Source: Selaginella moellendorffii
Lineage: Eukaryota > Plantae > Lycopodiophyta
Reading direction: 5' to 3'
NCBI RefSeq assembly: GCF_000143415.4
Contig: NW_003314419.1
Span: forward strand, 220,111 to 248,900
Length of the DNA: 28,790 bases
Shown here: one piece after another, positions 3,287-28,170 of the stretch
How positions within the stretch are numbered: position 1 is the stretch's first letter
Layout: each line of letters opens with the position of its first letter
Notes under the pieces: model-generated
The model's database searches: none
What the model saw: only the letters and a program-made list of their open reading frames with translations
What the model was told of the DNA's origin: nothing
Made by a program: the position numbers and the translations under genes

Positions 3287-3312
3287 CCCAGTGGAGCTGG
3301 GGTCTTTGCTAG
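3287..3312 (+). other. Helitron 3' terminus (hairpin + CTAG), subfamily X
   Basis: CCCAGtggagCTGGG gtctttg CTAG t. Confidence 0.75.
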
Positions 3313-3599
3313 TACTCATATCATCATCATATCATCAAACTCTTTATTTAAAGTTGCTATTTTGGCATTGGCATCACATATTCCATTTTTTGAATATCCA
3401 TTTTTACTTATGGCAGATGCTCTCAATTCAACGATCCAGATTTTTGACGCTCCAAAGCAATGGTGCGGATTGTTACATGGTGGCAAAGAGCTTGGTTTTA
3501 GGTTTAAGAAACGGTTAATATGGCTGTCCGTATCTGGAGCATATTGGATGCTAAAATTTTATTGTGGGAGAAGAAGTGCATCGGATGAGAAGTAGAACT

Positions 3600-4290
3600 T
3601 TCCCGTCCCATATACTGTACATCCAAGACCTCAAGAAGAAGGTGACATCAGAGGTGATTTTTGTTTCAGAATTTCTGAACGATACAGGTATTGCTCAGAA
3701 GAAAAAACAAATTTACTGCTTCTCTAGGTACTCTAACATTCAAGCGAATCCAGGGTGCCTTGCAGCATTTTTCCAGTCCAGTGAAGCTGATCAATGGCAT
3801 CACAACAAAATCCAGTGAGTTTTGTTTTAGAAAAAAAAATGACTACCATCTTTGGATATGCCTGTACAGCTTGCTTTGTGTAGCTCTAGGAGATGTAGTC
3901 GAGGTTCTGGTTGGAATAGGTGGAGAGGCAAGAGCTCAGGCTGGGAAGCAACATCCTTGGAAGCTCTCCAAACAGGATCCGATTGATGCACATGTCTGCC
4001 TGGGTGGAGGTGCGCTCTCTGTTCCTCATTACCAGAGCTCACTGCCACAGATTCTGGAGAGTGCAAGAGACTGTTGGACTTCCAGGGAGTAGTTAGTGGA
4101 AAAGGTAGCTGACCTGTTTCATCACTTTGTTTCATTTCTGTGCTGCTGCAGAGTGACAACTTGCACACCAAGATAGAGGAGGATGAGAAAGAGAAGCTGT
4201 AGAAAAAGTAAGCCCACATCCCATCTCTGTGGCCATGTGTCTGAATCCATCTGTGTTGCAGGGAAGAGGAACGTCAGCTCCAGAAGAAGA
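3600..4290 (+). pseudogene. Unidentified multi-exon host gene fragment(s)
   Basis: GC-richer sequence with short GT..AG intron-like segments (e.g. 3688-3727) and a coiled-coil-like last exon (REEERQLQKKKKR). No family recognised. Confidence 0.4.
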
Positions 4291-4454
4291 AAAAGAGATG
4301 AGCAAAAGGCCGAGGTCGACAGTGACACTGATGAAAGGGAAATGACAGCGATGAAGGCGAAATTGACAGCGCTGGTATGGTTTGGCAGCTTCAATCAAAT
4401 CCAGTAAAAGATGAGAGGTGGCAGATGAACAGAAAAATAAAAAAACTGGGCAAG

Positions 4455-6329
4455 TTTGGGATCTCACCAGTATGGGGAAGACTGGGTAATGCTTTGCGTG
4501 TTTGTGTTTTTTCCAACCATGCTGTTCGTGATTCCAGCGGAAGTTCTCGAAGGCCAAGTTAATCTTTTGAGAGTCGAGCTAGGAGAAGTTCAACTCACAA
4601 AGCTCTTGGGAGGAAAGAGGTGGATCAGATGCCATGGTAAACACGTAAACCTCCTATTTTCTTTCATTTTTTTCTTCAGGAATTCCATCTCTTGTTGCCA
4701 AGCCGCTGGGGTGTAGGGAATTAAAATGCCTGATTTGGTAAATTCATGAAGCCTTGTTCCGCTTTTCCTGACGAACACTGTAGGTACTCCAAAGGCCTCA
4801 GCTACGATTCTATACTGGACTGGGACAGCAACGCTGCTTCTTGATCTTCCTCGCATACGTTATTATTCTTCTCAGAACTAGGTAGCCACAATTTTCACTA
4901 AAATCTAAAACAAGCACTGACTAAAGTCACGCAGATCCGAGTTCATTAAAAATCCTGGACCGCATAAGGTGCTGGTATAGTAGCATAAATTTTTTTTTAT
5001 GATGCTAATCAAAATCTCTCTCTTTTGCACTTCTTTTTAGGTGAAACTTATTCTTTTTTCTGACACAGAAGAGCGTGCATTTCCATTCAGAAGAGAAGCG
5101 GTCAAGAAGGACTCCGAGTTTATGTCTTTCGGATGTGTTTTGTGGAGGCAAGAGGAAGCTTCGATTTTGAAAAGCTGGTAGTTTTAGTGATAATCACGTG
5201 AATTGATTCATGCTTTTGCGTGTGGAGCAGGTTTGGATTAGAGTTGGCACCGGCAGTAGTTTTCATCAAAGATCCAGGTGTCCAGCCCATAACTGTTTAT
5301 GGTAAAAATCTTCTTTTCGGCAGCTTTGAGATGATTTCTTTCACTTTGCGGGTAAATTGCAGGTAAATTGCGTGACTCCTTCATGGAAACTGTGGAAGAA
5401 CATAAAGTTCATGGTAAGGACTATGTAGGCTCTTCCTCCTTTTGCTATCTTTTGAATTGCAATTTGATGTGTGTGCTTTTATTTCTTCCTCAGCTGCAAA
5501 GCATCACGGCTTCCAAACTTGGATGTGATCCCGCGGACTTCTCTGCAGCTGGAAAAGATGTAGAAACATGGTACTGCATTGTGGTTGCTGGAAGGCCTGG
5601 TTTTCAGCTTGATCAACTCTGCAGTGTAAGATTTTCTTTCTTGTTGTTTCTAGCTGACGAGTTTCTCATTTTAGACAATGAGAATTGTGTAAGTGAGGAC
5701 ATTGATAGCCAAAATTTTGCTGCTGCCACTGTATACAAAGACAAGCATTTGAGCCTATCAGGGCTTGACGGCGAAATGCAAAAGGTGGATACTTATATAG
5801 CTCGCTGGTTAATTAATCCTTGTTTTTGTGCAGAAATTTTGCTATTACTGCCTCCCTTCTGAACCCGTCCATGAGACTTGCAGGCCGAGGCAGTACCAAG
5901 TGCAAGACGTGGCAAGGATTTTGATGATACGTTTTAGAAGAGATCCAACATCAAAAGCCGGTGGTGAAGAGAATCAATACCTGGTGGCATTTGAATTATG
6001 AGGAGCCAGATTTAGCATCGATGCTTATTGCTCCATACAGTGATGCAAATGAAATCTCGGAGGTTGGTTGGTTTCATTTAGACTTTTTTCTCTTTTCTTT
6101 GCTATACCAAAGAGTTTTTCTGCAGGTTTTATCGTGAATTTCTAATAGTGTTCATGATGGCGACACAAATGAAATTCCATTCTTTGTAAGTGTTGTGGTG
6201 TTTTGAAAGTATGGAGAACTCTTGACTGTGGGATTTTGTTAGAATACTAAGTCGATGCCTGCGTTAATACCCGAGGAGCAAGCAGTCTTGATGCTCTCTT
6301 CAACACGGAATGCTGTGAGTGGAATGAGG
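4455..6329 (+). pseudogene. DNAJC16: DNAJC16-like (At1g18700-type DnaJ/thioredoxin-fold) gene fragment, copy 1; introns retained, J-domain absent
   Basis: Spliced exons read VELGEVQL / GIPSLVAKPLGC / LDLPRIRYY / VKLILFSDTEERAFPF..VLWRQEEAS (5041-5177) / LAPAVVFIKDPGVQP (5231-5301) / LPQLQSITASKLGCD..TWYCIVVAGR / LSLSGLDGEMQK / KFCYY..DVARILMIRF (5834-6062) / DGDTNEIPFF (6126-6185) / MPALIPE. This is colinear with the plant protein as I recall it. Frameshifts and a stop are present. Confidence 0.85.
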
Positions 6330-6574
6330 GGATTTATAAATAAAAGTTTGTTTAGAAATTACAGATTGTGCATGTTATTAGCTTCTATGCACTATTTGGC
6401 AGAACAAAAAGGGAACACTACATTTAATAGAGTATCCATGACTGTAAGCTTTTAATTTTGTTGATGTTTCTTGTAAAAAAAATTATAAATTGAGCTAAAG
6501 GACAAAAGAAAATGTAATTCAAAATAAAGATATTACATAAACAATCAAAAATTAAAGAAACGAGGAAGAACATT

Positions 6575-7150
6575 ACCAAAACTGACTCTCTTTGGCAATC
6601 CATGCAGCATTCCAGTTGTATGTCGAGAGTCTTCCTGCCAGAAGAACAAAGAAACTATGGTTATAAATCCAAGAGAAAAGCACTAGATTTACCGTCAGCA
6701 TCCACAATGTCATTGGGAAGAAGGATGAGGCAAAGCACAGTGAGACCAGACCAGACAATAAGAGCTTGATCATTCAGTTGCCATGATGCCAAGAGTCCCT
6801 GTGATTGCTTTGGTACTTCCCAAAGCTCTCATGTGTAGAACAGCTTGTGTGCCAAACAAATCCTTGCCAGGCGAGTAAGGGAAGTGATTAATCCCTGGTC
6901 CAAGCGAAAAAAAAGTAGGTGTTGTTGCAAATCACAAGAACTTACACGGGATTTTCTCACGTGAGGTCATGCAGCATCCATGTGAGCAGCAAGGAGAGTG
7001 CGAAGAGGCTGCAATACCCGATTCTTGCCAATCGGCAAGAGATGCTGCTCGCTAATCCCTCACAAGCCTGGCAAGCGTAAGCTGTGCAGCCGGACACTAG
7101 ACAAAATGTCGCCCACATCATCAGATGCTCGCTGGATCAAGAAGCAAAAC
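6575..7150 (-). pseudogene. Unidentified three-exon gene fragment, antisense to the element
   Basis: Minus-strand GTAA donors and AG acceptors at ~6945/6895 and ~6692/6635 join in consistent phase: ..HMDAA*PHVRKSR|GLITSLTRLARIC..DIVDADG|RLSTYNWNAAWIAKESQFW. The stops are TGA, plausibly from CGA. Confidence 0.45.
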
Positions 7151-7549
7151 CTTAGAATTTGATTACATTGTCCCTCGCTTTAGTTTTTTTTTTATAACAC
7201 TAATGCCATGTTGTTCTGTTGTAGATTTTCTATCGTTACAGAACTGAAAGGCAGAGAGTTTATGGTTGCAGTATTCTTGCAGTGATCTGGGTGGGATAAA
7301 TGTTGTATAGCTGTTTTACAGTTTTGGAGTCTATTGAAATATCCAGTGTTTGCTCGAAATTTCCCAGCGAGGAGCGCACTGGCAATGCAGCAGCTTTGTG
7401 CACTGGCGCTCTCAAGTTATCGTCACTGCAGCCACTGATATGATCGTGACTGGCCGCTCAATCGATCAGATGCCATATCTGAGCGCCAATGCCATACCAT
7501 TTTAAGGTTTCTTTTTCCTCCAAGTTGTCCAGATAGCCAGCTGAGTAAA

Positions 7550-8592
7550 TCCCAGGCTGTTCACTGGGAATCCACAGCAGTGTGGCAGTCACTGCCTTCC
7601 TGACATTCTCGAGTTTTCTCAAAAAGTGGTACCATGAGACGGTGCTCAAGCCGGGACAGCCTCCACTTCCACCGGGATCTTTGGCAACGTGGCTGCTTTT
7701 CTCAGAGGCTTCAAGTCTGGAAGACCGACTACATTGCAAAGTTGAGTGATCTTGTACTTTCTTTCGCTTGTTTAACTGTCGCTTNNNNNNNNNNNNNNNN
7801 NNNNNNNNNNNNNNNNNNNNNNNNNNNNNNNNNNNNNNNNNNNNNNNNNNNNNNNNNNNNNNNNNNNNNNNNNNNNNNNNNNNNAAATTTGTAAAGACAG
7901 CTTTGAGACAGGATGGCCGGAGAGCACTGTTGTGCTCATTGGACGAAATTTGTTTGCAGGGTTAACTGGAAAGAGCCACTTGAAGCTCCAAGCCCGCTGT
8001 GAACAATCCCAAAGCTCTCAAGCAGTATGTGCCCCTCATCGTCAACAACATAAAAGCGTCCCTTGTGAGGTGGTCTACGCAGGATAAGATCGTTCTTCTT
8101 ACCAGTAAGCAATTGTCTTAGTTTTCTTGTTGACACTGGTTTTTTCTGATATGACAGTTCACGTTTCTAACTGTCCTCTACATTTTATATGGGAAAGACT
8201 CCAGTCTCGACATGAAAGAGACTTTCTCCTTCTACTACATTGTCAACCAAGGCATTCAGGCTCTCCCCATCAACTTCCTCGGCACTGCCTACAACAAAGC
8301 CATATGCGTTGTACATAGCTTTGTGACGTTTTCTCATTTTCAGGCCGAGGCAAAAGCTCATCAAGCTTATCCAGGACGTGATCAACCAACGCTTCTGGAA
8401 AGCCGCAGGAAACAAGCATTCTTTTGTTGCTCATGGATCCGCCGGATGACAAAAAAGAGGTGCTGGAAGACGCTCATATCATTAGACATGCTCAACATGT
8501 ACATGAATGCTGGTCACGACTCAACGGCTCATGTCATCATGTGGCTGATGATTTCCTAAAGAAAAATCCATGATGTGCTTGAGAAAGTGAAG
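7550..8592 (+). pseudogene. KAO: Cytochrome P450 CYP88 (ent-kaurenoic acid oxidase-like) N-terminal ~60% fragment
   Basis: Reads WYHETVLKPGQPPLPPG / IFGNVAAFLRGFKSGRP / DSFETGWPESTVVLIGRN / PAVNNPKALKQYVPLI..RWSTQDKIVLLT / FTFLTVLYIL / NQGIQALPINFLGTAYNKA / RQKLIKLIQDVINQR / DMLNMYMNAGHDSTAHVIMW (I-helix) / DVLEKVK. These are CYP88 hallmarks. There are many frameshifts, no heme-binding region, and a 100-N gap inside. Confidence 0.85.
7785..7884. other. Assembly gap (100 N)
   Basis: N run. CYP88 is colinear across it. Confidence 1.
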
Positions 8593-9229
8593 ATAGACAT
8601 TTCCAATTTCATACAAACTTTCCTTCATACAAAATTTCTTCTTTAGGCCACATCCAGACTATTCTGTAAGAGTTTCAAAACTTCTGTAATTAAAAAAGAA
8701 AAAAGTATTCTACTGAATTGTACCTCATACAAGATGATACGCTGTGTATTCTCATGCCTCCACTGTTCTAATTCATCTCTGTCACTTCTGTATTTCGAAG
8801 GAAACACTATTTATAAAAACTCTACATTTATGGTTACCCTTTTCTCCAATGGACCTAATGATGACATGTTCAAGATAGAGACAAACTGGTAGGTATTCTT
8901 AAAGAACCATAGAACTGAACACCATCTCTTTAAGGGCAATCTATGAGGCGCTTGTGAGGCTCTGAAGTGTTAACCTCCTCTGGATATCTTTCAATAACAA
9001 GAAAAAACCTTTAACCTATGAAAGGTACTTTTTCACTGCTTCTTTCATGTTTTATGGAGTCAAGTTACAGCTTCTGGAATTCTATGAGCAGCATCTGAGG
9101 AATGTCTAGGGAATGAGAAATAGTAAGGTGTAGTATGATATTTTCTTGTTCTAATAAATAGTTAAATAGGAGTACATTGTACTGCCTGTTGTAGCCTTTG
9201 TGGCTTTGCTTGACTACAAAACAATGCTT

Positions 9230-9675
9230 ACAAAGTCAGAATGACACAAGCAGAGATTTCATAAAAAAAGTCAGTCTCTTGCCACTTCACTCTCAAACAA
9301 TGAAAGCAAATAATGAATCACCCAAGACAAAATGTGGAAGAAGAATAGAATTGGATTCAGCACCTTTGCGAATACCCAGACAGACACATATCCTTGCAAG
9401 AGGAAGAGATCTAACATCAGTTGCATTGCCTGACACTAGATTCAGGAGCTTCCTTAGAATGGCTTGTGGTGGCAGGGAGCATAGAAACATGAGTTCAGGC
9501 CACAAAGGTCACCATTTCAATCTTATTATCAAAGGGTCCTTAACAAATGTGTTACAATCCACTGCTACAAAAACTAACATCGTAAATTCGTGCAAATAAT
9601 GGTATCCTAAGATCACAATCTCCTATTTCAATAGTCCAAGCTAACACATTATTGCAAATGAGAAAAGATGAGACC
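9230..9675 (-). pseudogene. Unidentified decayed two-exon fragment
   Basis: Minus-strand splice-like signals at ~9675, 9578, 9538 and 9230 around a GC-richer patch. No family recognised. Confidence 0.25.
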
Positions 9676-11189
9676 TTGTAGTAAGTAGAAAAATAAGAAG
9701 TTGATAGTTGGCCTAAAGAAGGATTTTAGAGAAAAAACATATAATGGATTTGGCATTTGAAGCAAGAAAGAATAAGGAAGGTTGCTAATCTTATGAAAAA
9801 CATAGTAGTATTTATATTGGAAAGTAATTTTTTTTTCTGCTATTTAGAGAAATCTTTGGTGATGTAGATATTCCAAACATGCAATTCTTATGAATATCTC
9901 AAAAATATCATTATTGTTTTAGAAAACACTACTCTTGAAGACTTAAGAAACTACAAGAAAAAGCTTTGTTAGCTTCTTCTTGGATATGAAAGAAAAACTT
10001 GAGCTACCTTCTGCAGTTCCATAAGCTAAGGAGTCCTTGCTGGTACATCCAAGCACGATATTAGGTGAAGTTCCTTGGGTGTTAAGTCTTATCAAGTGTT
10101 GGGCTATTCAATGAGCACGATAAAAATTAAAAATAGGTTGAGAAAAAGGAGAAACAACATGTCTTACAAATAGCAGATAGGTTTTTTAAAAAAAGTTAGA
10201 ATTTATGCTAGGGTCCTCCCATGATTAATTTAAATGATGATATTAAAAAATATTACAATAATCCAGATAAATTCAAATAATACAGCTTTTTAATTATTGA
10301 TAATGTAAATACTGAATAGTTCTATTACTAATGCAGTAATATTAATGACATGCATTGGAAATTGGGATTAGAGCAGTAATAAAAAATGGAATTTTGTCAC
10401 ACATAATGACATCTTAACACTTCTATGACAATACAGATTTACTTCTTCTGGTAAGCAAAGAAAATCCATTATATCATTCACCATTATAATGTTCAGAAAA
10501 TGGTAATAATGTCAATAATAAGCACTATTTTATTATACCATGATAATAATTAAAAAAATGATAACATTTTATATATATATATATATAAAATATACCTTTT
10601 GCAATTACTCTCTGGAAGAGTTATTTATAATAATAAGGTTTTCAGAAAAACTTTTGACACTTCAAAGATGAAGAGTTAAAGGAAAAAGAAATAGCAAAAT
10701 TAAATATCCAGGTAAAATTAAAAGTAATGACATCTAATCAACATGAGTATACAATTGTGTATCGAAATAATTTCTAGAAATTTCATTATATTAAATAGTG
10801 TCACTAATGTATTGGTCAGATTTACTAAATAATTGTAATAACACTTCAAGAATTAACAAACTCCAGCTCCACTACAAACTCCAGCTTGAAGAAATTTTAT
10901 GAGTAATTTTATGTTCTAAATAAATTTATTTATAAACATTAAAAGTCAGTGAATTCACTTCATTTATCTACATATTTATATTAAACGAGAAAAGTAAGGT
11001 ATAATATATTTTACACTTATTGTAATGTACTGGTTAATGCAACCATGAAGTATTCACACTTTATTTATAATAATGGGTTTTACAACATGACAAATACATA
11101 TAACATGCACATACTTAAGGAAGTTTTAAAAATGTCATTAGTTTTTTAGGATATTTACAAGTACAATTAATTTTCTACAATGGATTTTT

Positions 11190-12411
11190 AGACTTATAGA
11201 TTTCTACAACATTTATATTAATATGTATATTACATGTTAATATAATATGTATATAACATGTTATAACTATTATCTCTAGAATTTGTTTTTTAAAACAGTT
11301 GGTATATTTATGATATGTTTCAATAATATGTTTTAATAAATTTAAAAATATAATAAAATATCATTCCTTTTTTTGTTTACATAGAAATATGAGATCTAAT
11401 TTTATAGATTTTATTTTATTTTATTTTAAATTTAAGTATCAATAATATAATATTTAATAGAAGAAATTAAATATATATTGAGAATAATGTGCAATAGTAA
11501 CATTTTACTCATAAAAGATAAGCCTAATAGTCCAGTATTTGTTTCTAAATTGAAAATATAAAATAAACTATAAAAATTAAAAATATTTAATATGACATTA
11601 AATAATGGATCCTATACAAAAAATAATTATTTTAATACATAAATATTAATAAAATCTACATGTTTATATTTAAAACATTAATATTTTTATATAATATATT
11701 AATCTGTAATCATGTCCTCCTTTATATAATTGCTGAATAATAAGTAGTGTTGAATCATTCAATAGTAATTTTTTTTATAAATTGGAATGTATAGTTTTAC
11801 TATAAAGCATTAGTAGAGATTTGTCTTAATACAATTGCATCTCTAATATAGTTATTATCTTTTGATGTACCTCTTTTCAAACACCTCTTATGTAGTGTGA
11901 GTATCTAGATAGATTTACTTATGTTTATTTGTAAATATAAATCGAGACACATAATAGAAATTCTCTTGTTCTTTATTAGACTATGAAAGTTAAAGGCAGC
12001 ATTATAGTTCAGATAAAAAAAAATAAAGCTCAGTATGTAATCAAGAAAATAATTTCCCCAAACCTATTTTTTTGGCAGTATATAATTCTTTGGTTTTGTG
12101 AAAACTCAATTGGTTTTAGATCATGGCATCAATCTTGTAGACATGTTTAGGGTTTTGTATCATTTTATAAAGGCAATAAAAAAATTCAAATTTAAATTTA
12201 ATAATGATTAAAAAATGATCTTATCTTTTCCAAAACTTGCATTTTTTATCTATTTGCATTATTGTGCATTTCTTTAGAGGTGAAGAGTAGCAAAATTAAG
12301 ATAAATTTAACTTTGTATACAATCAAAATTTCTAACATTGTAAAATTAGAAAAGAAGATGTATTTATCTTAGGTATACTATATCTCCCAGCAGAGCTGGG
12401 GTCTCTGCTAG
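11190..12411 (+). repeat. AT-rich subfamily-X subterminal repeat
   Basis: Homologous to 1-1008 and 2790-3312. Confidence 0.8.
12386..12411 (+). other. Helitron 3' terminus (hairpin + CTAG), subfamily X
   Basis: CCCAGCagaGCTGGG gtctctg CTAG t. Confidence 0.8.
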
Positions 12412-12487
12412 TACTCATATATTTAAACGAAAGAGCCAGTATAATAATAGCATATACTGGAGACACTTATTCTAGGTATATGCTGAG

Positions 12488-12503
12488 ATCTAACGGCCAG
12501 GAT
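12488..12503 (+). promoter_or_regulatory. Conserved ATCTAACGG..GAT quasi-palindrome in the 5' module (MSA/MYB-like AACGG core)
   Basis: Equivalent motifs lie at 3426-3441, 20819-20834, 25752-25767 and 28271-28286, all ~70-105 bp inside a 5' end. Function is not shown. Confidence 0.35.
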
Positions 12504-12767
12504 CTAATTGTCAAAGGTTGGAGAAAAATTTTATGTGGCTTTTTAGGGTTGGAAAAAATGCGTTCAGCGACACAAGAGGCAGCAGGCAGATGTACTCTCT
12601 CCTGGATTCTGTTCTTGCAGACTACATATTTTCCACTGGAGATTAGAATTAGATGCCTGATTCTTTGCGGATTGGCATTTTCTCTTTTTGTTTCTCAATT
12701 TATATTTTTCTCTGCCTTCCACGGATTGGTAGGTAAATCTGGAATTATGAATGCTTTTTTTCTTAGC

Positions 12768-13075
12768 ACCTCCAGCCAAGAGCAAGGAGAAGAAGAAGAC
12801 GGTGCTGCATCCTCCGGTTATTATCCTCCAGTGATTCTCAAGGAGCCACACCAAAAACTCTGGAAGAGGTTAGCAGTAGAACTTCTCATCGATTAATGGG
12901 AGGCAACTCAATATACCTGACTATAAACCATGGAGGCACTCTTCTCATAGCCCAGAAAAAATTCCAGAGAAGTGAAGAACCAATCTGGGATGACGACCAG
13001 CTCCAGCATCTGAGTCATCTCCTCTGGTTCCTCAGACGATGAGCTGCTCAAAGTCTTGTTGCTCATTCTCGTCAG
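12768..13075 (+). pseudogene. Unidentified exon fragment
   Basis: Bounded by ttcttAG and GTAAT. A long frame DSQGATPK..HGGTLLIAQKKFQRSEEPIWDDDQLQHLSHLLWFLRR*AAQSLVAHSRQ has a single TGA. Confidence 0.45.
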
Positions 13076-13114
13076 GTAATGTGCAGGTGTGCTACAAAAT
13101 TGAAAACTCATGTA

Positions 13115-13827
13115 GAAAAGGTTTTGTGGACAGTGAGGGTGTGAAGATTGTTAATATTTCTGTGGAAGGTCTAAGTCAAGCTACTATACATGTAGCACTA
13201 ACTCTGTGACGAAGAGCGTGTCAGATGGGTACGACTTCTTGTTTGGAGGTAAATCACTTTTTTAAATTAATCACGTATGTTACTAATCAAGTGGCATGGC
13301 AGGGTGCTGGAAAGACCTCCATATTATGCACTGTGGTGGCATAGCATGAACACTGATATCAACAATTTTTTTTCCAGACATCAAGTGTCATGAAAGCGTT
13401 TCCTGCAGTGTAGGATACATAGATTCAGTATTCAGTAGGCGTTAACTTTCAGGTAAAAATTTCTTCCTTACTCTGCTTTGATTGGTTTACCAATTGGTTC
13501 CATATAGGACCTATCATATGAAGAAGAGCAGCTGAAGAATGGTTTGTTGAGAGCAGATCCATATAAAGTCTTGACTTGGTAATTCTCGTGCACAATCTGG
13601 CTCACAAGAGTACCAGGCTACGACAACAGGCTGCCGATCACTCTCGACCAGCTCTTGGCACCCTCCTGGACGAGATCACTACTGCTGAGGTCCCTTTCGT
13701 TTTAGATCTTGCCATGAGTGCCGACTGGCATCAGCTTTCAAGCGTTACAGCCATGGACGTGTACAAGTCCACTCCCGACTTGACAAAGTCCCAGGAACTG
13801 CAGAGACTGGGACATCGTTGGAGGAAG
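13115..13827 (+). pseudogene. C-terminal P-loop region of plant lipase class 3 family protein (At3g07400-type), fragment
   Basis: EGLSQATI..LE|GAGKTSIL (Walker A split by intron 13249-13302)..VGVNFQ|DLSYEEEQL..LDLVILVHNLAHK..RPALGTLLDEITTAEVPFVL..VYKSTP is colinear with the recalled GAGKTSL..GVNLQ..DLIILVHNLSH..PALALLLDE. Stops and frameshifts are present. Confidence 0.75.
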
Positions 13828-13889
13828 GTCTCTTTTTTATATCGATTTTTTGTTTTCACCATTTTTGCAGAAAAAATTAGTGGAGATGA

Positions 13890-14298: not shown

Positions 14299-14310
14299 AC
14301 CACGGATTGG

Positions 14311-14387
14311 GAGCTGGATCCTTTGTCCTGGAGGCCAGAGTGGCCACGAGCTAGATCCTTTGTCCCAGAGACTAGAGTGGCCACGAG
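14311..14387. repeat. 37-bp tandem duplication (2 copies + 3 nt)
   Basis: gagctggatcctttgtcctggaggccagagtggccac / gagctagatcctttgtcccagagactagagtggccac / gag. Confidence 0.9.
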
Positions 14388-16554
14388 ATGGAAGGGTTAA
14401 GGCTAGGGTTTATGCAGAATGTGGTGGTGGTAACACATCACAGCCGAGCACCTCTCTCTGTTCGATCACTGGTCCGCAAAGATCTTGAGGAGATCCTTCC
14501 AGCAAACGATCTTATCGATATCAATATCGAGGAGCCACTGAAAAATAATCTAGAGTAACTTCAGCCAAAGAGATTGATTGAGCTCTCCAGTTGCCAAAGA
14601 CCCGACTACCATTGCTTTGGCAGCCTCTGCTCAAGATGTCCTCTGGTGAATTCCAAATATCTTCACACCCAGCTCAACGAGCTAATCCAAGCGACGTGCT
14701 AAGTAGTGAGTGCCTCACTCTCATGCTTTCCTGTTCATTAAAGTTCCTGTTTTTCCAGTTTTATTGTTAATCCAAAGTGGAAGTTTAGCTCTTTGTTTCA
14801 CAGATTTATAAAGCTGACCTACCCAAGAGAGTTCAAAAGTCAGAGTCACGTCTCCAACTAGAGGCTTAAGTTCTGCAGCCTTGAAAACCCCAGGAAGCAA
14901 TCTTCTACTTCCGCAGAGCCTATCACCTCCACTTCACAACCACGGCCTCATTGCTCACCTGCCTCTTATTGTTTTTTTTACCTCTTCTTGTCCTTTTGGT
15001 AAGAGCAGCAGTAACAAAAGCAAGCTTCCGAAGGAAACATGTGCTCACTAGGGGAGGTCTTCTTAGCTGTTAGAGTAGAGCATAGGAAATTATACAAGGA
15101 AGGCAATCTCCAAGGAAGTATGGAGCAGTAGATGGAAGCTTTAGGCCCTTGATGTAGTTCTTTTTTATTTTTCCCAATTTTTTAGATATCACATTGCCTA
15201 GAGCTGGAATATTATAAAAGAAGGTAACAATTCATTTACAGCTAATGGATTTAAGTCCTTGCTCTGTTTTCTAGCTTTAACAGAACCCACTGATAAACTT
15301 TATAGTAATGCAAAACATTAAGAGATTACTGGGAACAATGATCTATTATTGAACCACCATGATCTATTGCTGTAATATGACCAAAGTAGGCTGAGGCTGG
15401 TTATTGTCTTATGGTGATTTTGCTCTGGTTGTGGGACATGCAATGGAATGGTATCCAATGCAACTTGGTAGCTCTGAAGATCAAGCCCTATGAAATATCA
15501 AAGAAGTATATATGAACAGTAAAGAATATAAGTATCAACCTTCATTGTGATAATTGTGTTACTAAAAAACTGTCATGGCAAACACAGATATATAACATGA
15601 AATAACAGTGTGTTACATCGAGAAACACTTAGTTTGCAAGATTAATCTTATTGTATACCAATTATTAGATGGTAGAATAAACTAGAGTATACAATATGTA
15701 TTTGGGAAAGTCTATAAATTCTAAACACATTTCAAAATTATAAAAAAAAGACTAATCTTAATGAATAACAACTATTAGATAGTAGAATATCCCAAATATC
15801 TAAGTATAATCTAGGTACATCAACTACCCTTTTCGTTTACATAAGCAAACCAAAAACATTTTATAATTATAGTATTTCTATTTATATATCAAACAGGAAT
15901 ATAAGAAACTCCATATAAAACATTCTACCTTTTCTTTGATCAAATAACCATGTAATTGTATAATTGTCTCTGACCATAAACGGTTGGGCTTTTTTAAAAT
16001 AATTCCAAAAATGTTATTGAAACACTACTAACACCACTAAAGTAACAAAATATAAATTATAATATAATATTTCTATATTGGCTTGACTAAAATTTACTAA
16101 ATATAAAGAAAGAATTCTTTGAAAGCCCAATTCTATTAAAACTTGAAAATTTAATAAGAAAGTAAAGTGAATATTTATAAAATAATTTAAAATATATTTA
16201 TTCATAAAAGAATATTTATAATATTAAAAAAAATATTTAAGTAGAATATTATCAACAAATAATATAATAATATATTATTTTTTATTTTTCATTTTAAATT
16301 ATTAAAATAATTAAATATTTCCAAATAATTATTGCACTATTATGTAGTTTCAAACAAGAATAATAATATCTTAATAAATACTTTATAATTTATGATTAAT
16401 TAAGTATTATTTTAATTTTTTAATAAAAGTGGGGTTTTTAGCTCATGATTCATCCATTAATTTTCTCCTTCTGCATATTATTATAAAAGTAGATTAATTT
16501 TTAAAAAACTATGACTAATAGTGTTATCCTTTCGATAAAGGTTTCAGAAAAGTT

Positions 16555-16657
16555 TGTTATGCATGTTATGATTAATATTAACATTTTATATATAAATATG
16601 AATATAAAATTTTAGAAATTACTAAATAACAGAAATGTACATGACACTCTCAGCAAA
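16555..16657 (+). repeat. Internal subfamily-Y 3' end truncated in the hairpin loop
   Basis: gttatgcatgttatgatt...aattactaaataacagaaatgtacatgacactctcagcaaa matches 17333-17434 and stops at the loop. Confidence 0.65.
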
Positions 16658-17329
16658 TATATATTTGGAAATTTTTATAGCTAAAACTTCTGTATCTAAC
16701 TATAAATAACTATGATGCATCAAAAAGTGTTTGTAAAATATATATTTACTCTAGAATAACTCAATCACAAAAATTATTATTAATGGTAATTGTGATCTTA
16801 TATACTGATAATTAATTCTCTATAATAGATTTATGACACATAAAAGTTAGTTCTCAATATAATGAGTTGACCAATTTAGCATTTATCCTGTGTATGAGAA
16901 ATTATTGTAGCACAGGTGGTTTTCACCCTTTATCTTATGGTGATTTACCATGATGATTTATGGTGATTTACCAAAGTTATATGACATTCCTAATTCTGCC
17001 ACCACTTAGCATCAGTGTTGTTAATGCTGCTGCTGGATGTTCAATACTGCACATAATTTGTACAATAGCAGTTGATATCTAATAGATATTCTCATTTGAT
17101 TTTTTAACTAGGGTTTGGTTAAGAACACGTGGGAACTGACTTGTCATGTCAAGAAAATGAATTGTCATATGTAAAGCTACTTATATTTCTATATCTCCAT
17201 CTAATTTCTGATACTACATTATAAAAGTTAATTACACTTGTATGATGAATGATGATATATCCCAAATTGGCAGTCTTGTCCAAACCACTAAAGGTGCTAA
17301 ATATCTCTGATGTGTGTTTTTATATTAGA

Positions 17330-17450
17330 ATTGTTATGTATGTTATGATTAGTATGAACTTTTCAAATATAAAGATGAATATGAACTTTTCAGAATTACT
17401 AAATAACAAAAATGTACATGACACTCCCAGCAAAGCTGGGACTTGTGCCT
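17330..17450 (+). repeat. Internal, defective subfamily-Y 3' end (hairpin intact, CTAG lost)
   Basis: TCCCAGCaaaGCTGGGA (17425-17441) is followed by cttgtgccttgg instead of cttttgctag. The ~100 bp upstream resembles 20660-20722 and 25550-25637. Confidence 0.7.
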
Positions 17451-18430
17451 TGGATGAGTGTGATTGAATATATTGCCAATAGCAGTAATTTTAGCATGTA
17501 GGGTTTGTTTCAGATATCTCTATTGACCATGCATTCTAGGGTTGCTAGATCACAAGTTTCTGTGACAACTCATGTTAATCACTACAAGTAGTCAGTACCT
17601 TTCTCTTTGTTAATCCATTATCAGATTCTTTGTTAATTTTTCTTTTTCTCTCTTGGCAGGATTTCTGGAAATAGCATAATCTAGCATATAATACAATGCT
17701 TGTGGAAAATGAGTATCCTCTAAGGCAGGCTTGCTCAAGAATATTTAACATAACATTAGCATAACCATACAAGTTAACAAATGGTTAACAAATGGTATGG
17801 TTAATTTTATGCAGGTTCAAACTTTAATTATAATCCTCTATATTTCATTGGCTATAACCTTTGTAAACCAAGCTCATATAAGTGTCATGATAAATAGTTA
17901 TCTCAAACATGTTGTAAACTTTATAAAGACTCAATCCAATACAGCTCACTAATAAAATAAAATAAAATAAAATAAAAACCTAATATAAAATTTAATCTCC
18001 CTCAACCACATATTTTCCTTGTATAAGAATTAAATGTCCAATATAAAACCATTGGAGCTGTGAATGTTGTAGGAAATAAAAAAAAACTTTATACATGTTA
18101 TGGCCCTTATTATTTCAGTAACATGACAAAGAAAACCTATTTTAGGTGTTGAACTCGCACTATTGATTCTTGGGTATGGGCATCAAGGAGAATGTGAAAG
18201 ATACATTGAATAGAGGTAGGCAATGCTAGAGAATTGCTATAGCAAGAGGAAGGTATGTCATGGCCAGGACCAAATCAATGTCAAGAAAGCTAGGGCAATG
18301 ATGAGGTAGGTAACTTTTCTTTGAGGTTAATAGTACATGGAATGATCCATAATAAAGTGTGTAATGGGCAGCGATGGTGATGAGATGAACAGTCTGCCTC
18401 TTGAATTCAGGGCAAATAGGTCCCTCAACC

Positions 18431-18920
18431 ATGGCAACAACAACACTAATTCCTGTATTAGATGATGATGCTGGGTATTGGTGCCTCTTGTGAGTGCCAT
18501 TATCAACCCACGGGCAAATGCATAAAATGAACAGAGTGTGGAGGAATCTTGTCTCCAGTGCCAAGTTTTATGACAATTGTTCTGTATAAGGATTGATTGA
18601 AGGTGTACTGGTGGTAACAGTGTTTCTCAAATATGGGAAAGAGGTCTTGATCATTCAATCCTAGAAGTGCCAAGAAAGTGTGGATGATTATAGTACATAG
18701 GAGAATTTGTGTGTCAAGCTCTTGACAGAAAGTTCTATATTGATCTACACATGAATCGATGGAGTTCTTTGGCATCAATGTTGTGTCCTTGAAAGTTGTG
18801 TGCATATGTGGTTATGGATGGCCAACTCTATGTAGTGGGTGGTGCTTATATGGGGACGCATCCAATAGCCAAGATACTCAATCCAGTGGATGATCAATAG
18901 GATCCTCTACCATTGCTGAT
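18431..18920 (+). pseudogene. F-box/Kelch-repeat protein pseudogene (may extend decayed to ~19450)
   Basis: F-box: MATTTLIPVLDDDAGYWCLL*VPLSTHGQM..NRVWRNLVSSAKFY. Kelch: NRWSSLASMLCP*KLCAYVVMDGQLYVVGG..ILNPVDDQ*DPLP. Multiple stops, so it is absent from the ORF track. Confidence 0.85.
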
Positions 18921-19474
18921 TTTATCCTACCCTTGTCATCAATGACAATAAAATAATTATGAAAGATAGTGGTTGCTTCTTCAGATCAACATTTGTTTTT
19001 TATTAGCACAAGATTTGTCTTGAAAAGAGATGAATATAATTGCATTGCATGGGCGACACTTCTTTGTACACTTCAAATAATTCTACAAGCCCAACATGTA
19101 TGGATTGTTGAGGCAATAACATTTGGACATTGGCTCAATGTGGTGAACACTTCTCAAGCAGATAACTACAAGCTAATGCTCTGCTCAACAAGCTGCTAGA
19201 AGAACATCTGGGCAATCTCAAGAAATTGCAAAGTTGTGTCAGTGATTCAAGATAATAGCACTGAACCAAAGTGATAGATGTTTACAATCTTGATGTGCCA
19301 TTGGTGAATACCAATGAATACCAATGAAATGTCCTTCAAGGTTAATATAATTACAGAATATGTATTAAAATATCATGGTACAGACAATCAGGTCTGCTTT
19401 GCCATACCTTCACTTTCAAAACTTTCAACATACAACCTATTAAATCTCATGCTTGAATATCTTATATATTTGTT

Positions 19475-19573
19475 TCTTAACTTTTCAAATATAAAGAAAC
19501 AGAAGAAATGAAAAGCCGAATAAGGAACTTTACCAAATTACTTAACAACTGAAATGTATATGACACTCCCAGC
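19475..19573 (+). repeat. Internal subfamily-Y 3' end truncated after the left hairpin arm
   Basis: aacttttcaaatataaaga...aattacttaacaactgaaatgtatatgacactcccagc matches 17357-17431. Confidence 0.65.
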
Positions 19574-19639
19574 TTCACTTCTGAGACTGAGATTTCTCTT
19601 TTTTCATATTATCAACAAAAGTATATACAAATTTATATG

Positions 19640-20750
19640 ACTATTAATACAATCATCAATGATTAAACATATTGAGATTTTAATTGGCTCAGATGTAGTC
19701 TAAGATTTATGTAATATCATAAATTTTCTAACATTTTTTCGAACATTGTAATTATATATGAAAAAAATAATAAGGTATAAATATCATTGAGACAACATTA
19801 GTACAAGAACCATCTAAAGAAATGTGATTCACCATCAATTGAACTTTAATTAAATTAAATCTATCTATATACCATTTATGAATTTTCTGGTATATTATAT
19901 TTTTAGAATAAAGAAAAAGTTTATATATCATCATTACCTCAGTATAGAGTAAAACCTTGCCATTCATTTATCATTATAAATTTCAGCCTTTAAAGCATTG
20001 TAACAAATCCTTAATTTTAAATATAAATCCATGAAAATAGAGAGATAATAACTTATTTTGCATTAGCATTCTCTCTATTAAAAACACATACAGAAATAAT
20101 GCTAATGATATAAAGTAGAATACTTCTAATATTAAATATTACTCTCAAAATGTAAGAATATAAGTATTAGGAATAAGGGAATATCAAAGATAAATATGTA
20201 AAATTTTGAAATTTTCCTAAAAAAATATAACACATAAAGGTAATTTCTATCACTTAGTATCATGCAATTCCAAAACCTTCAGTCTAAAGAGATGAAAAAT
20301 AAAACTCCATAAAAATGGTTATATTTTTTTAATTTTATAAGATGTATATAGTTTAAGTGAGTTTTAAATCTTTATTTTTGAAATCATTACTTAAGAAACA
20401 CATTTTTTATTAAGAGGAAAAATTGTAGATCAATTATATGGAGATTTCAAATAAAAAGTAAAGTTACCAAGCCTCAATATTTAATTGACTCATCTGGCCA
20501 TGGAATCCCACAGTGAAAAATTCCATTTATAGAAGATCATGCAGCACTCAGAGTTTTAAATGTTATATTATGTTATAAGTTAAATTTATTATATTATTTA
20601 TTATGTTATATTTGTAGAAAAGATTTTGAATATAAATATTATATTATGTTATGTTAACTATGTATGTTATAATTATGATTTCAACTTTTTGAAATACTAA
20701 AACATCAAGAATAAACACGATGGTCCCAGCGCAGCTGAGACTTTTGCTAG
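19640..20750 (+). repeat. AT-rich subfamily-Y subterminal repeat
   Basis: Homologous to ~24570-25664 (ctcagat.tagt.taagattt, ttgagacaacatta, gactcat.tggccatgg, cagagttttaaatgt). Confidence 0.8.
20723..20750 (+). other. Helitron 3' terminus (hairpin + CTAG), subfamily Y
   Basis: GTCCCAGCgcaGCTGAGAC ttttg CTAG t (one stem mismatch). Confidence 0.75.
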
Positions 20751-20943
20751 TATTTAAATAAAAGAGCCTGTATAACAATAGCATATACTGGGGATGCTTA
20801 TTCTGGGCATATGCCAAAATCTAACAGTTGAGATTAAATAATGAAGAGTTGTGACTTTTAGGATCATAAAAAATATTAAATGCCTTTTAGGGCTGGAAGG
20901 AAAGCAATGCACGAGGAGAGAGCATTGGTAGTGGGAAGGTACT

Positions 20944-20944
<1 letters not shown>

Positions 20945-21016
<72 letters not shown>
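20945..21016. repeat. Compound microsatellite (TG)12(AG)16 AA (AG)7
   Basis: Read directly from the sequence. Confidence 0.95.
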
Positions 21017-21017
<1 letters not shown>

Positions 21018-21022
21018 TGAAA

Positions 21023-21370
21023 TTGAAGAAGAAAAAAGGAATACACGTTGCCTTTGAGACAATCAAACGCGAGCTAGGGGAGTTTCAGAAACAGAAGCAG
21101 ACTGCCTTGAATCAGATCGACATCGCAATCACACTTTACATACATCAAGTAAGTTAGTATTCTCCCCTTGTCGTTGATTTCCAGCTTACTGGCGTGCCAC
21201 AGGTCGAGTATATCGAAAATGCTGCGATTCCCAAAGACCTGTCTGGTGGCCTCGTCTTTACAAATGCCTCGTTGAAGCAACTGAGAGCGACAATTGAGAG
21301 GCACGTAGCCAAGAAGGCGGCACTGAGGAGATTGCAAAAGGACCTGCGAAAGGAGTACGCCAGCAAGAGA
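21023..21370 (+). pseudogene. CFAP44: CFAP44 (WDR52) cilia/flagella-associated protein, C-terminal coiled-coil fragment; 2 exons
   Basis: ELGEFQKQKQTALNQIDIAITLYIHQ|VEYIENAAIPKDLSGGLVFTNASLKQLRATI (intron 21149-21202, in phase) matches the recalled CFAP44 segment YQREKQQRLNEL..IPLKLHQIEY..IPSDLSGTLVFSN..LRRLQERI. Confidence 0.8.
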
Positions 21371-21374
21371 TACC

Positions 21375-21840
21375 TCCTCCGCCTCTCAACATGGAGCTCT
21401 TCTTCTCCATAGCCAACCATAGCATGATGCGCCTGCAAGAACTTGGTTGAGAGGCTGCTCCAGTTGCCATGGGGATCCCATTACCGATGGAAGCAAATCC
21501 TCCAGAACATATGCATGGATCCACCTTGGCCCTGCCCAGCCAGTGGATTTGCTGAAGAGCTCGCTCATCACTTGCCTGGCAGGGAAACCTTTTCTCAGCA
21601 CGTGGATGTGATTCCAGTAAGTGCTGCAAATGTAGTCCTCCTTGAGTGCCTTGACGAATCCCGTGGACACGGCCTCCTGTCCATTGCTGGACAAATACAA
21701 ACATCTTGCTCCTATAATACATCTGACCAGGGATGACGTCCTCATAGAGCCCCAATTACTCCTCCCTTGTCACGAGGTGGAGAGATGCCTTGGCAGAGGC
21801 CGCTGTGGGGGGCGGCAGCAGCACAGCTGATCCATGGAAA
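21375..21840 (-). pseudogene. UDP-glycosyltransferase (GT1) internally deleted fragment, antisense to the element
   Basis: Across frames, in order: [47 protein letters not shown] (end of PSPG box), KFL. The core HCGWNS is missing. Confidence 0.55.
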
Positions 21841-22149
21841 TCCTGGCCCTCCTGCCCGTAAACGCGCTGCTCCTGGCTACCACACTGGAAGATTGCATAT
21901 AAGAATGTCTGCCAAACCATCCATAGCAGCATATCAGCCGTGCTACCTTTCTCCTTTCAAAGCTGATGGTTTTTGCAATGTATTGAAAATACCTGTAGTT
22001 ACTAAAAAGAACTTTGAAAACTTTTATACATATGAATTCCTCAAAAGCACTGCTGCGAGCTTAGAGTGCTAAACTATGGGTATCCATTTGGTAAGTTATT
22101 TTAATGCTTTTATTATTAGTTTTTATGTTTTATTTGTAGGTTTATTAGG

Positions 22150-23070
22150 TTTTGATCTGGTCTACAAACCTGTTCGGCTTTGGGTGCAGGTTCATTTAAA
22201 AAAGGTCTGCAAGGGGAGCTTGTGGCTGCTACAGATCTCTGAGTGAATCGGACGAGTAAAAGACTGAGCGAAGGCTGGGCTTTTATGTAAGGTGCCTTTC
22301 TGGTACCTTCATCTGCTTTTCAAGTTCATCAGTCACTCAACTTGATTCAAAATGCAGGAAAAGCTGGGCAGAAAAATGCGTATAATGAATAAAGCACTGA
22401 TCTGATCTCTTCTCCAGCATCGCCGAATCTTCTCCCCTGTGCACAACAAAGTGGAGCTCGCATCTTTGCTAAGTCCGTGTCTTGGGCCAGGCACTGTATC
22501 ACAATATCGTCACCATCTCAATGCTTTCGTAGACAATGAGAGAAAGAACCTCAAGAAAACATGGCTTTGGGTGGATCTTCAATGTAGAAAGTAGATTAAA
22601 TGCAAATGGTCAGCATGGCCTTATACAAGCTTGATGATTTCCTCATTCTCTTGTGGAATTCATCGAGAATCTGAGCAAACGTGGACTGTATCTTTGCTGC
22701 TCAGTGCTTGGCACAATCTTCGTATGGCAACCTTGGGTTCTTGCTTAACTTGCAATGTTTTGGAGGGCTAAACTAAGTACATTAAACCTATTGCCGACTA
22801 GATTATCAGCTGGCCATCATTGTATATACAATAAAGTCTCCTGGCTAACAAGCCCTTGTCTCCTTTCCAATGTCTTTCCTACATTACGCAGGCAATTCAG
22901 TCGTGCCTCAAGGTTGATGGACCAAGACAATTCGGTTCGCAGCTCTGGCATTGGAGGTGGCACATCTGTTTCTTGTTTATCCAAAAAATGCCCTCCACTT
23001 TGGTGTCTTAGGCTGCTGCATCTCCACATAAATTTTGTCTCTCTATGGACGTGGCATGACAAAAGAAAAT
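22150..23070. pseudogene. Unidentified gene fragments (+ strand ~22150-22740; probable - strand exon ~22785-23050)
   Basis: GC-richer coding-like patches with short intron-like segments. No family recognised. Confidence 0.3.
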
Positions 23071-24347
23071 TGCAGCGACCTATAAACTCACTTCTCTGTC
23101 TCATTGAGACTCACACAAAAGAGCCAACCAGGCAAGTTTCTTATGCTCAAGTCTGACAATCATTTTTCTGGTGTTTATATTACAAAACAGACAAATAATA
23201 ACATCAATTATTGATTTTGATTTCCTGTTTTTACACAATGCATTAATGAAGCTAAGAACTATTATTTCCCTCAAAAAGGCCTGGAAGAACAAAACTGAAG
23301 CACCAGCTGCTGGTTGGTTTTATTTTTTTCTAGCAGCAAGGTTGTTTTTCTGTAGAGACAAAAATTGATCTGGAATCCTAGATGTTCCTATAGACACAAT
23401 CAAGGTCATGTAAGGAATGCTGTGTAAGGGATCAGAGCCTTGACTGTGGCACTAGATTCAACCAAGAGTATTGTTCTTAGCCAGGACTCAGGACCAAACA
23501 CTTCAATGATGACATGGATTATTATTATAGCTAAGTCTATCACTGACTTAAAGGTATACAGCCATTTCTCCATATGATCTTTACCATTTGTTGAATTTAG
23601 TTGCATGAGAATCCTCTAGAAACATTAAGAGCCAAAGTGCTAACATAAGTATCAGATTTGGACAAGCTGAGAGTTCCTTATAGGAGGCTACAGAAAGAAA
23701 CTTCAAACCATTACCATGTCAAGAGGACTTCACTTTCCCTCAATGTTTCCAAAAGCCCTTTTATGAAATGTAATGGATATGCACCTGTCTGTAGAAACTT
23801 TGAAAGCTAAAGCACATTCTCAATAAATCAGAACCTACTTTAATTTCTCTGATAATGAGTAAACCAAAATAATCCTACTCTTTCCAAACAAATATACTCT
23901 TTACTTGTGAATTGATGTTCTTCTCCTTGGTGGAGCACTTCTTTCTCTAAATACACACAAACTTTGCACTATAATTAAAAAATTGCTTTATACTTGAATG
24001 AAAGTGGGCTTCCATTTCATGCATAGACTCAATATAATCTCTGCAAATGAGAAATATAAAAGAGTAACTTTTAGTTAATAATAATGGTATATTCGGTTTT
24101 CTTATTTCTTATAAAATGTTTTAAAATAGTATTAGACTATTTCTTATGATCTTAATATGTATTAAAATTATTAGCACTAAACATTAATCCAAAAACTACT
24201 CTCTCCATTACTCATAAATTTTTACAAGTATACCATAACTTATTTAAAACTATTCATTTCAAAAATTATTGAAATATCTAAAGAAATCACTAAAAATATA
24301 ATTAAATTTTCTCTTGGAAATTTTTTAATTTTATTTTAATATATAAT

Positions 24348-24372
24348 TTCCAGCAGAGCTGGAATCTCAGCA
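24348..24372 (+). repeat. Internal degenerate subfamily-X-like hairpin without CTAG
   Basis: TTCCAGCagaGCTGGAA tctcagca, compared with ctCCCAGCagaGCTGGG gtctctgcta at 12384. Confidence 0.5.
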
Positions 24373-24942
24373 TAATCACACTTCATTAATAAAATTAAAC
24401 ATAATTTTGTTATACAAATATGGTATATAGCAGAGACATAAAAAAATATACTATAACATTAAATTAAATAAGTACAGCCTATAGAACATGAAATATTTCA
24501 TAAGTTAAAATAGAAGAGTTGAATAGCACCAGCTATTTTAACTTGTAAATTAGTTTTAATTTTGAAAATAATCTTATAATATATATTACACATTCATCAA
24601 TAAATCTAATCACATTGAGTTGTCAATTACCTCAGATATAGTGTAAGATTTGTGCAATATCATAAAGTTATAATACCGTTTTTAAGACTAATAAGTTGTG
24701 CATTGATACATGAAAAACGTTTTTAAAAAATATAATCATATAAAGGTAAAATCATGATTGAGACAACATTACACACAATACAAAAGGCTACCATCTGAAA
24801 AAAAATGTCATTCATCATCACTTATACTTTTATTATTATTAAATTAATCTATAGAACTTTCTTAAATTTTCTGATATAGTATGATTTTGAAAAAAGATTC
24901 TGTATCATGCATACCATAATATCAGAGTAAAAATTTAACTTT

Positions 24943-25191
24943 NNNNNNNNNNNNNNNNNNNNNNNNNNNNNNNNNNNNNNNNNNNNNNNNNNNNNNNNNN
25001 NNNNNNNNNNNNNNNNNNNNNNNNNNNNNNNNNNNNNNNNNNNNNNNNNNNNNNNNNNNNNNNNNNNNNNNNNNNNNNNNNNNNNNNNNNNNNNNNNNNN
25101 NNNNNNNNNNNNNNNNNNNNNNNNNNNNNNNNNNNNNNNNNNNNNNNNNNNNNNNNNNNNNNNNNNNNNNNNNNNNNNNNNNNNNNNNNNN
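24943..25191. other. Assembly gap
   Basis: N run within the subfamily-Y subterminal repeat. Confidence 1.
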
Positions 25192-25637
25192 TAGTGTGTT
25201 TTAAATCTATATTGTTTAACATCATTATATTTTAGTGTTTTTAAATAATAGTTACTTTATTAAGCGGAAAAATGTTAGAGTTGAATGAATCATGAAGAAA
25301 GAATATTTTATAGATTTCAAATAAAAGAAAAACTTAGTTACCAAATCTCAATGTCTAAATGACTCATTTGGCCATGGGATTTCATAGTGAGGAATTCCAT
25401 TTATAAAAGATCCAAGACTTCTGTCAACAATCAGAGTTTTAAATGTGATTTAATGTTATGAGTTATATTTATTATATTTTGATGTGTGGTTGTGATAGAG
25501 TCAATTGTAGAAGGGATTTTTAATATAAATATTATATTATGTTTAACTATGTATGTTATCATTATGATTATGTTAAAAATTATAATTATGATCACAACTC
25601 TTTGAAATTACTAAAATATCAGAAATAAACATGATGC

Positions 25638-25664
25638 TCCCAGCGTAGCTGGGACTTTTGCTAG
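25638..25664 (+). other. Helitron 3' terminus (hairpin + CTAG), subfamily Y
   Basis: TCCCAGCgtaGCTGGGA cttttg CTAG t. Confidence 0.8.
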
Positions 25665-28010: not shown

Positions 28011-28170
28011 CAATGATAAGATTCCAATTATGTAAGTACCCTGAGATCTGTTATCAATATAATTATCAAGTATAAAAACATGAGCATGATATGATATACG
28101 AATCATATAAATCAACTGTAAATACGTTACATATTTGTACGTATGTTTATTTGACATAAGCTTAACCACA

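Follow-up and report, generated by a model that had tools for sequence, protein, structure and literature searches.

The DNA stretch analyzed here, 28,790 nucleotides (nt) of Selaginella moellendorffii contig NW_003314419.1 (RefSeq assembly GCF_000143415.4, positions 220,111 to 248,900 of the forward strand; hereafter, the window), is a head-to-tail, same-strand stack of non-autonomous Helitrons. Each unit of the stack is probably a composite, multi-terminus element that was built in layers. The 5' layer would be a conserved end of ~120 nt; behind it would lie comparatively recent host-derived DNA, consisting of pseudogene scraps at ordinary genome composition; and the 3' layer would consist of one or more old Helitron 3' modules, that is, AT-rich tails with a live or dead terminator. 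An earlier sequence-only reading of this DNA had described three complete units, each with a 5'-to-3' fall in GC and CpG, and both observations are borne out; it had further interpreted this fall as a graded chronological record of cargo capture. The stack belongs instead to a known type, the multi-terminus composite Helitron, here in a lycophyte, and is not a proven, dated capture record.

Live and dead terminators

A Helitron 3' end is recognized by CTRR with a short GC-rich hairpin within ~10-12 nt before it. Four true 3' termini of this kind end at 3312, 12411, 20750, and 25664, and all four consist of CCCAGNNNAGCTGRG, followed by N6-7 and then by CTAG. After each of these, within a few bases, comes a related 5' region of ~120 nt, which a 5'-end hidden Markov model (HMM) recovered five times in the window (3334, 12414, 20750, 25666, and 28179; E=3.5e-26 for unit 1 and E=3e-22 for unit 2). 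The start of unit 2 (12420-12494) is 84% identical to that of unit 3 (20751-20825). Units abut through precise CTAG-plus-5'-end joins (CTAG, then TACTC... or TATTTAAA...), with no host flank visible and with TC inside the first 5 nt at three of the junctions. Pfam searches of ~70 open reading frame (ORF) pieces, which have limited sensitivity for decayed remnants, returned no Rep or helicase domain, and we consider the units non-autonomous for this reason. Protein relatives of both identified cargo fragments, described below, are S. moellendorffii entries.

The stack also contains five same-strand sequences that are homologous to the 3' termini and lack CTAG (Table 1). The three within unit 2 were recovered by nhmmer with E values of 1e-12 to 2e-25, and a degenerate terminus pattern matched the window seven times, against 0.7 matches expected. 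A sixth candidate, in unit 1 (10186-10211), is very weak and was not counted. Across the 400 nt upstream of nine termini, mean GC is 0.258, as compared with 0.344 for the window, and only 34 of 10,000 random position sets were as low; the AT-rich blocks are therefore generally the upstream parts of live or dead terminators.

Two further features of the dead terminators were observed. Those at 16554-16657 and 17331-17434 share 86% identity across 104 nt with an exact spacing of 777 nt, and may reflect either a duplication or two related elements. The hairpin at 24349-24365 is perfect by way of paired changes (TTCCAGC/GCTGGAA, where live ends have TCCCAGC/GCTGGGA); C-to-T changes, one per strand, would yield them.

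Origin of the AT-rich tails

The tails preceding the true termini belong to two families, alpha and beta. The alpha tail of unit 1 (11301-12411) is 76-82% identical to two stretches of the upstream unit (93-1013 and 2791-3312); the homology spans at least 0.9-1.1 kb, 1.1 kb being a minimum since the match runs into the window edge. Between units 2 and 3, the beta tails are 69-80% identical over ~1.1 kb. Identity climbs toward the terminator in both families, from 72% to 82% in alpha and from 69% to 80% in beta.

In a three-copy alignment of the alpha tail, the majority consensus has a GC content of 0.240, and the copies themselves of 0.23-0.25; 42 GC-to-AT and 38 AT-to-GC substitutions were counted, implying an equilibrium GC of 0.22. 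As consensus and copies agree in GC and the changes are balanced, the tail must have been AT-rich before the copies diverged, at ~24% GC in their common ancestor. The tails are inherited family sequence at mutational equilibrium (~22% GC), not cargo eroded within each unit. Such an equilibrium may be that of long-resident and presumably methylated repeat DNA (methylation being our supposition), and it was reached before the present tail copies diverged.

The sequence-only reading had taken the AT-rich parts to be the aged cargo of each unit, which does not survive this comparison: in each of them, 1.1 kb or more is tail sequence with a homologue in another unit. Decayed Rep/helicase sequence or ordinary intergenic DNA had been named there as sources that would undercut the chronology. 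The shared tails and dead terminators do identify Helitron sequence in place of cargo, but the Pfam searches found no Rep/helicase remnant with them. A permissive self-BLAST of the AT-rich blocks gave low-complexity matches at 57-62%, in both orientations, and these were not counted as homology.

Composition along the units and loss of CpG

The contrast between the two ends of each unit is pronounced. In 200-nt windows, GC declines with distance from the 5' end in units 1-3 (Spearman's rho of −0.67, −0.57, and −0.77, respectively; p from 5e-7 to 1e-4). Three composition classes can be distinguished, and the positions assigned to them in the sequence-only reading agree with our computed block table: pooled across units, the young class has a GC of 0.44 and a CpG observed/expected ratio (o/e) of 0.49, the middle class 0.345 and 0.11, and the AT class 0.22 and 0.18. 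CHG is not depleted in any of the three.

The proposed gradient holds as a contrast in all three units; its shape, however, is that of blocks, with one or two steps providing a better fit than a line. Per 200 nt, CpG counts of 4.6, 4.2, and 4.9 give way to 0.7, 0.5, and 0.45 near 8514, 15013, and 22950, respectively, whereas no significant trend exists inside the young blocks (rho of +0.14, +0.37, and −0.58). In unit 1, the 5'-most block (block A) has a lower CpG o/e, at 0.27, than the blocks behind it (B and C), at 0.52-0.60. Unit 2 is not monotonic: its AT block ends at 16657, GC rises back to 0.29-0.41 until 19573 (0.30-0.41 within 17449-19573), and then it drops again. Age proxies do not rise monotonically from the 5' end, including within the cargo, and a finely graded chronology is contradicted both by the missing trend inside the cargo and by the greater CpG depletion of block A as compared with B and C.

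Paralogous blocks within the window allow the rate of CpG loss to be gauged. The first 620 nt of unit 1 and their copy at 28169-28790 are 98.4% identical (1.4% diverged), yet 6 of 15 CpG sites differ; similarly, 16 of 51 CpG sites differ between blocks B and B', which are 95-97% identical at aligned positions (3-5% diverged). CpG is thus a fast clock in this DNA, and the CpG-free blocks must have existed as repeat DNA for much longer. The recurrence of those first 620 nt is also the sole evidence from copies that bears on whether a composite moves as one unit. Together with tails at their ~22% GC equilibrium, this bears out the claim that the 3' parts are older than the 5' parts. The relative order of ages, young behind the 5' end and old beside the terminators, is well supported.

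Block B (4284-6344) and block B' (25941-27977) share ~2 kb of homology behind 5' ends that are only ~75% alike, and the homology begins abruptly on its left side, near 4283 in unit 1 and near 25940 in unit 4. The arrangement suggests that modules were exchanged between Helitron lineages or that one source was captured repeatedly. Block B opens, in both of its copies, with a 20-nt tandem repeat (2.4 copies; 4323-4371 and 25994-26042).

Gene fragments in the cargo

The only Pfam-supported fragment in the young blocks is a PDH-E1alpha pseudogene fragment on the minus strand of unit 3 (21455-21797; E1_dh, E=8e-6). It sits 0.7-1.0 kb from the 5' end of the unit and is interrupted by a stop and a frameshift. 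Its identity to SELMODRAFT_432175, itself a degenerate E1alpha model, is 91% (41 of 45 amino acids). Unit 1 carries a fragment of a KAO-like cytochrome P450 on the plus strand (7887-8616), with a frameshift near 8445-8525. In an exhaustive search, 82 of 101 amino acids (81%) of this fragment were identical to XP_024523329 ("ent-kaurenoic acid oxidase 2"), a degenerate 291-amino-acid model that probably represents a pseudogene or a further copy of this P450 fragment carried by a Helitron. The sequence-only reading had described the 5' cargo as fresh; both fragments are already broken, and the young blocks are younger than the remainder without being fresh copies. The one 3'-proximal gene that it recognized, an F-box/Kelch gene with many stops, does correspond to a decayed Kelch-repeat fragment in unit 2 (18694-18897, plus strand), although the Pfam match (E=0.002) falls below the curated cut-off.

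The P450 exon piece begins 2 nt after the assembly gap at 7785-7884, at 7887. The piece before the gap resembles a P450 membrane anchor followed by PPGS by eye only, without confirmation from Pfam, PDB, or tblastn, and continuity of the P450 across the gap is plausible. XP_024523329 also contains HIQVSNCPL, which matches apparent intron or frameshifted DNA of the window fragment (8150-8180).

Most of the cargo could not be named. The Pfam searches of ~70 ORF pieces yielded only the E1_dh and weak Kelch matches, a PDB sequence search with seven pieces returned nothing, and none of 10 ATG-initiated ORFs was present in the protein collection by exact look-up. Divergence between fragments and their parents is represented by two rough points from different units (E1alpha and P450, at 91% and 81% amino acid identity), both measured against degenerate comparators.

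Proposed layered assembly and alternative explanations

We infer that the polarity of the units arises because a terminator-bearing tail is inherited along a Helitron lineage while new DNA enters upstream of it. Two capture routes might produce this arrangement. DNA could be captured internally between conserved ends, as in filler-DNA repair, with the inherited tail remaining as the oldest part; alternatively, a younger element or 5' end could fail to stop at its own terminator and continue into an older downstream Helitron (end bypass, including chimeric or nested configurations). Since either route places old DNA on the 3' side, the pattern is compatible with end bypass. The conflict with that model asserted in the sequence-only reading, which held that end bypass predicts the youngest captures at the 3' end, fails on the same point: how old a sequence is does not tell when it was captured, and read-through into an existing Helitron adds old DNA at the 3' end. 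The possibility that one complete element of the stack simply read through into the next complete one was considered and rejected, as no relic 5' end follows any dead terminus; insertion into the AT-rich tail of another Helitron, with subsequent bypass, would be a better fit.

Several observations weigh against a layered, composite origin. The same absence of relic 5' ends after dead termini, as judged with the 5'-end HMM across the window, is one of these. Dead termini were likewise not found where young blocks give way to middle blocks (near 8514, 15013, and 22950). Three AT-rich stretches (10212-11300, 15613-16550, and 23950-24340) have no homologue within the window and could be unit-specific old cargo. 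Some terminator calls are weak, that at 24349-24374 and above all that at 10186-10211, and the analysis covers a single 28,790-nt window.

The sequence-only reading offers a different account, in which cargo is always inserted behind the 5' terminus and pushed 3'-ward, such that each element reads as a young-to-old record. The same polarity does recur in each of the three complete units; in units 1 and 3, the young and AT blocks are separated by middle blocks whose GC is intermediate; and all young DNA specific to a unit is found upstream of every tail, at most a few kb from the 120-nt 5' end. Unit 1 additionally has an extra 820 nt (block A) before block B, where in unit 4 block B' begins ~275 nt from the 5' end. 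Nevertheless, the oldest DNA is not cargo but consists of tails shared by the family and of dead terminators; the young blocks have no internal trend, with block A more depleted in CpG than what lies behind it (0.27 vs. 0.52-0.60); unit 2 is non-monotonic; and the E1alpha fragment near the 5' end of unit 3 already has a stop and a frameshift. Composition by itself is no clean clock, since composition at the time of capture is not known. We consider this serial account unlikely. Its general form is likewise a proposition that we doubt, namely that Selaginella Helitrons favor the position directly after the 5' terminus when they acquire new DNA, for instance through template switching shortly after rolling-circle replication initiates, and thereby grow from the front with a coarse young-to-old stratigraphy. 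If true, such 5'-biased capture is not predicted by simple terminator bypass.

The contrast could also reflect source or function in place of age, with tails that are AT-rich by nature, perhaps maintained for unwinding or termination, and cargo at host composition. Tail composition was apparently the same in the ancestor as it is now, identity is higher toward the terminator, and rice Mothra Helitrons have been described as low in GC (PMC4683698). However, the substitution spectrum alone predicts 22% GC, and therefore no selection is needed; tails differ by 18-31% between copies, suggesting little constraint beyond the last 30-100 nt. The middle blocks, including the Kelch pseudogene, are host-like DNA minus CpG and some GC, which indicates that real decay occurs inside these elements. 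An origin of the contrast in source or function is quite unlikely on this evidence. Far less probable still is an assembly artefact, in which the blocks would be mis-joined pieces at N gaps. The region does contain three such gaps, and continuity across that at 7785-7884 is unproven. However, the other two are collinear with paralogous sequence: the flanks of 24943-25191 follow the unit 2 tail (19642-19954 and 20356-20752; ~400 nt expected vs. 249 N), and 26856-27289 is collinear with 5225-5688 of unit 1. The composition steps (near 8514, 15013, and 22950) also lie away from gaps, and the unit junctions are precise CTAG-plus-5'-end joins.

Comparison with known Helitrons

How Helitrons capture host DNA is unsettled, with end bypass, filler DNA, and chimeric transposition all being candidates. 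If ages ran in one consistent direction within elements, this would offer an inexpensive genome-wide means of discriminating among these models. In this lycophyte, the polarity is present as coarse blocks; composition alone cannot decide the capture model, because the old 3' DNA consists mostly of inherited tail and dead terminators, whose position every model can accommodate. The window does supply a local estimate of repeat decay, in which GC settles at ~0.22 and CpG is lost very quickly.

The closest parallel is found in the maize helA family, in which 28.7% of elements carry pseudo 3' termini without CTAG, related elements have 1.3 kb of 3' sequence in common, and nested Helitrons have been proposed (Dong et al. 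2011, PMC3288121). As in helA, the Selaginella units contain internal pseudo 3' termini that are homologous to the true end and lack an intact CTAG, with the true CTAG downstream; they have ~1.1-1.3 kb of 3' sequence common to related elements, along with gene-fragment cargo, and they occur as Helitrons beside or inside other Helitrons. Unlike helA, the host is a lycophyte, the tails are 22% GC where cargo-like DNA is ~44% GC, and no pseudo 5' termini were found in the Selaginella window. The age contrast between blocks that we observe in these units is not described in the maize helA paper (PMC3288121).

End bypass into the terminator of another copy follows a model that Thomas et al. 2014 (PMC4224331) attribute to Tempel 2007; the same paper reports the HelibatN539 case and describes compound Helitrons that use the 3' end of another copy. 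Like chimeric and compound Helitrons (PMC4224331), the Selaginella units appear to combine 5' and 3' ends from different lineages with foreign DNA between them, related 5' ends being paired with two tail families, alpha and beta. In contrast to those chimeric cases (PMC4224331), the joining event is only inferred here, and there is no relic 5' end of a downstream partner. Stepwise internal capture between conserved ends has been attributed to a filler-DNA model (Han et al. 2019, PMC6544945); the elements described there (PMC6544945) resemble ours in a conserved 5' end (131 bp there, ~120 nt here), a conserved 3' end, and differing internal blocks.

Feature coordinates and minor observations

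Table 1. Positions of units, blocks, and dead termini in the window (o/e, observed/expected ratio)
Feature	Positions	Strand	Remarks
Unit 0, 3' part of upstream unit	1-3312	+	three alpha-type tail pieces and a dead terminus
Unit 0, alpha tail pieces	93-1013; 1601-1689; 2791-3312		first truncated before hairpin; last with true hairpin and CTAG
Unit 0, dead terminus	2255-2353	+	E=1.4e-5
Junction with TCA-type stubs, then conserved 5' end of unit 1	3313-3459	+	5'-end HMM
Unit 1, young cargo (blocks A, B, and C)	3460-8513	+	assembly gap 7785-7884 inside
Unit 1, block A	3460-4283		CpG o/e 0.27
Unit 1, block B	4284-6344		present in unit 4 too
Unit 1, block C	6345-8513		includes KAO-like P450 pseudogene fragment 7887-8616(+)
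Unit 1, middle block	8514-10211	+	GC 0.35, CpG o/e 0.19; no recognized domain
Unit 1, AT-rich part	10212-12411	+	alpha tail 11301-12411, true hairpin and CTAG
Unit 2, conserved 5' end	12412-12540	+	5'-end HMM
Unit 2, young cargo, unnamed fragments	12541-15012	+	GC 0.44, CpG o/e 0.43
Unit 2, middle block, then AT block to dead beta-type terminus 1	15013-16657	+	
Dead beta-type terminus 1	16553-16657	+	hairpin cut in loop, no CTAG
Unit 2, block to dead beta-type terminus 2	16658-17448	+	
Dead beta-type terminus 2	17322-17448	+	hairpin intact, CTTGG in place of CTAG
Unit 2, CpG-poor block, decayed Kelch-repeat fragment, dead beta-type terminus 3	17449-19573	+	GC 0.35, CpG o/e 0.11
Dead beta-type terminus 3	19468-19573	+	
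Unit 2, beta tail, true hairpin and CTAG	19574-20750	+	homologous to unit 3 tail
Unit 3, 5' end (20751-20880), (GT)n(GA)n run, young cargo	20751-22949	+	PDH-E1alpha fragment 21455-21797(-)
Unit 3, middle block, then AT block to alpha-like dead terminus	22950-24374	+	
Unit 3, dead alpha-like terminus	24349-24374	+	perfect 7-bp hairpin, CATA for CTAG; pattern search, hairpin z=-2.9
Unit 3, beta tail, true hairpin and CTAG	24375-25664	+	gap 24943-25191 inside
Unit 4, 5' end and block B'	25665-28165	+	B' 25941-27977, with gap 26856-27289
Unit 5, (TCA)5, then 98.4% copy of unit 1 5' end and block A	28166-28790	+	runs off window

No hairpin with CTAG was found in unit 4 before the start of unit 5 (27978-28165); either unit 5 was inserted into the body of unit 4, or unit 4 is truncated. 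Rfam, tRNA, and tandem-repeat scans returned nothing relevant. Unit 1 and its 98.4% copy, unit 5, both have runs of TCA/TA stubs just ahead of their 5' ends, reading TAC TCA TA TCA TCA TCA TA TCA TCA at 3313-3338 and (TCA)5 at 28166-28181. A (GT)n(GA)n microsatellite of ~70 nt (20946-21017) lies directly behind the 5' end of unit 3.

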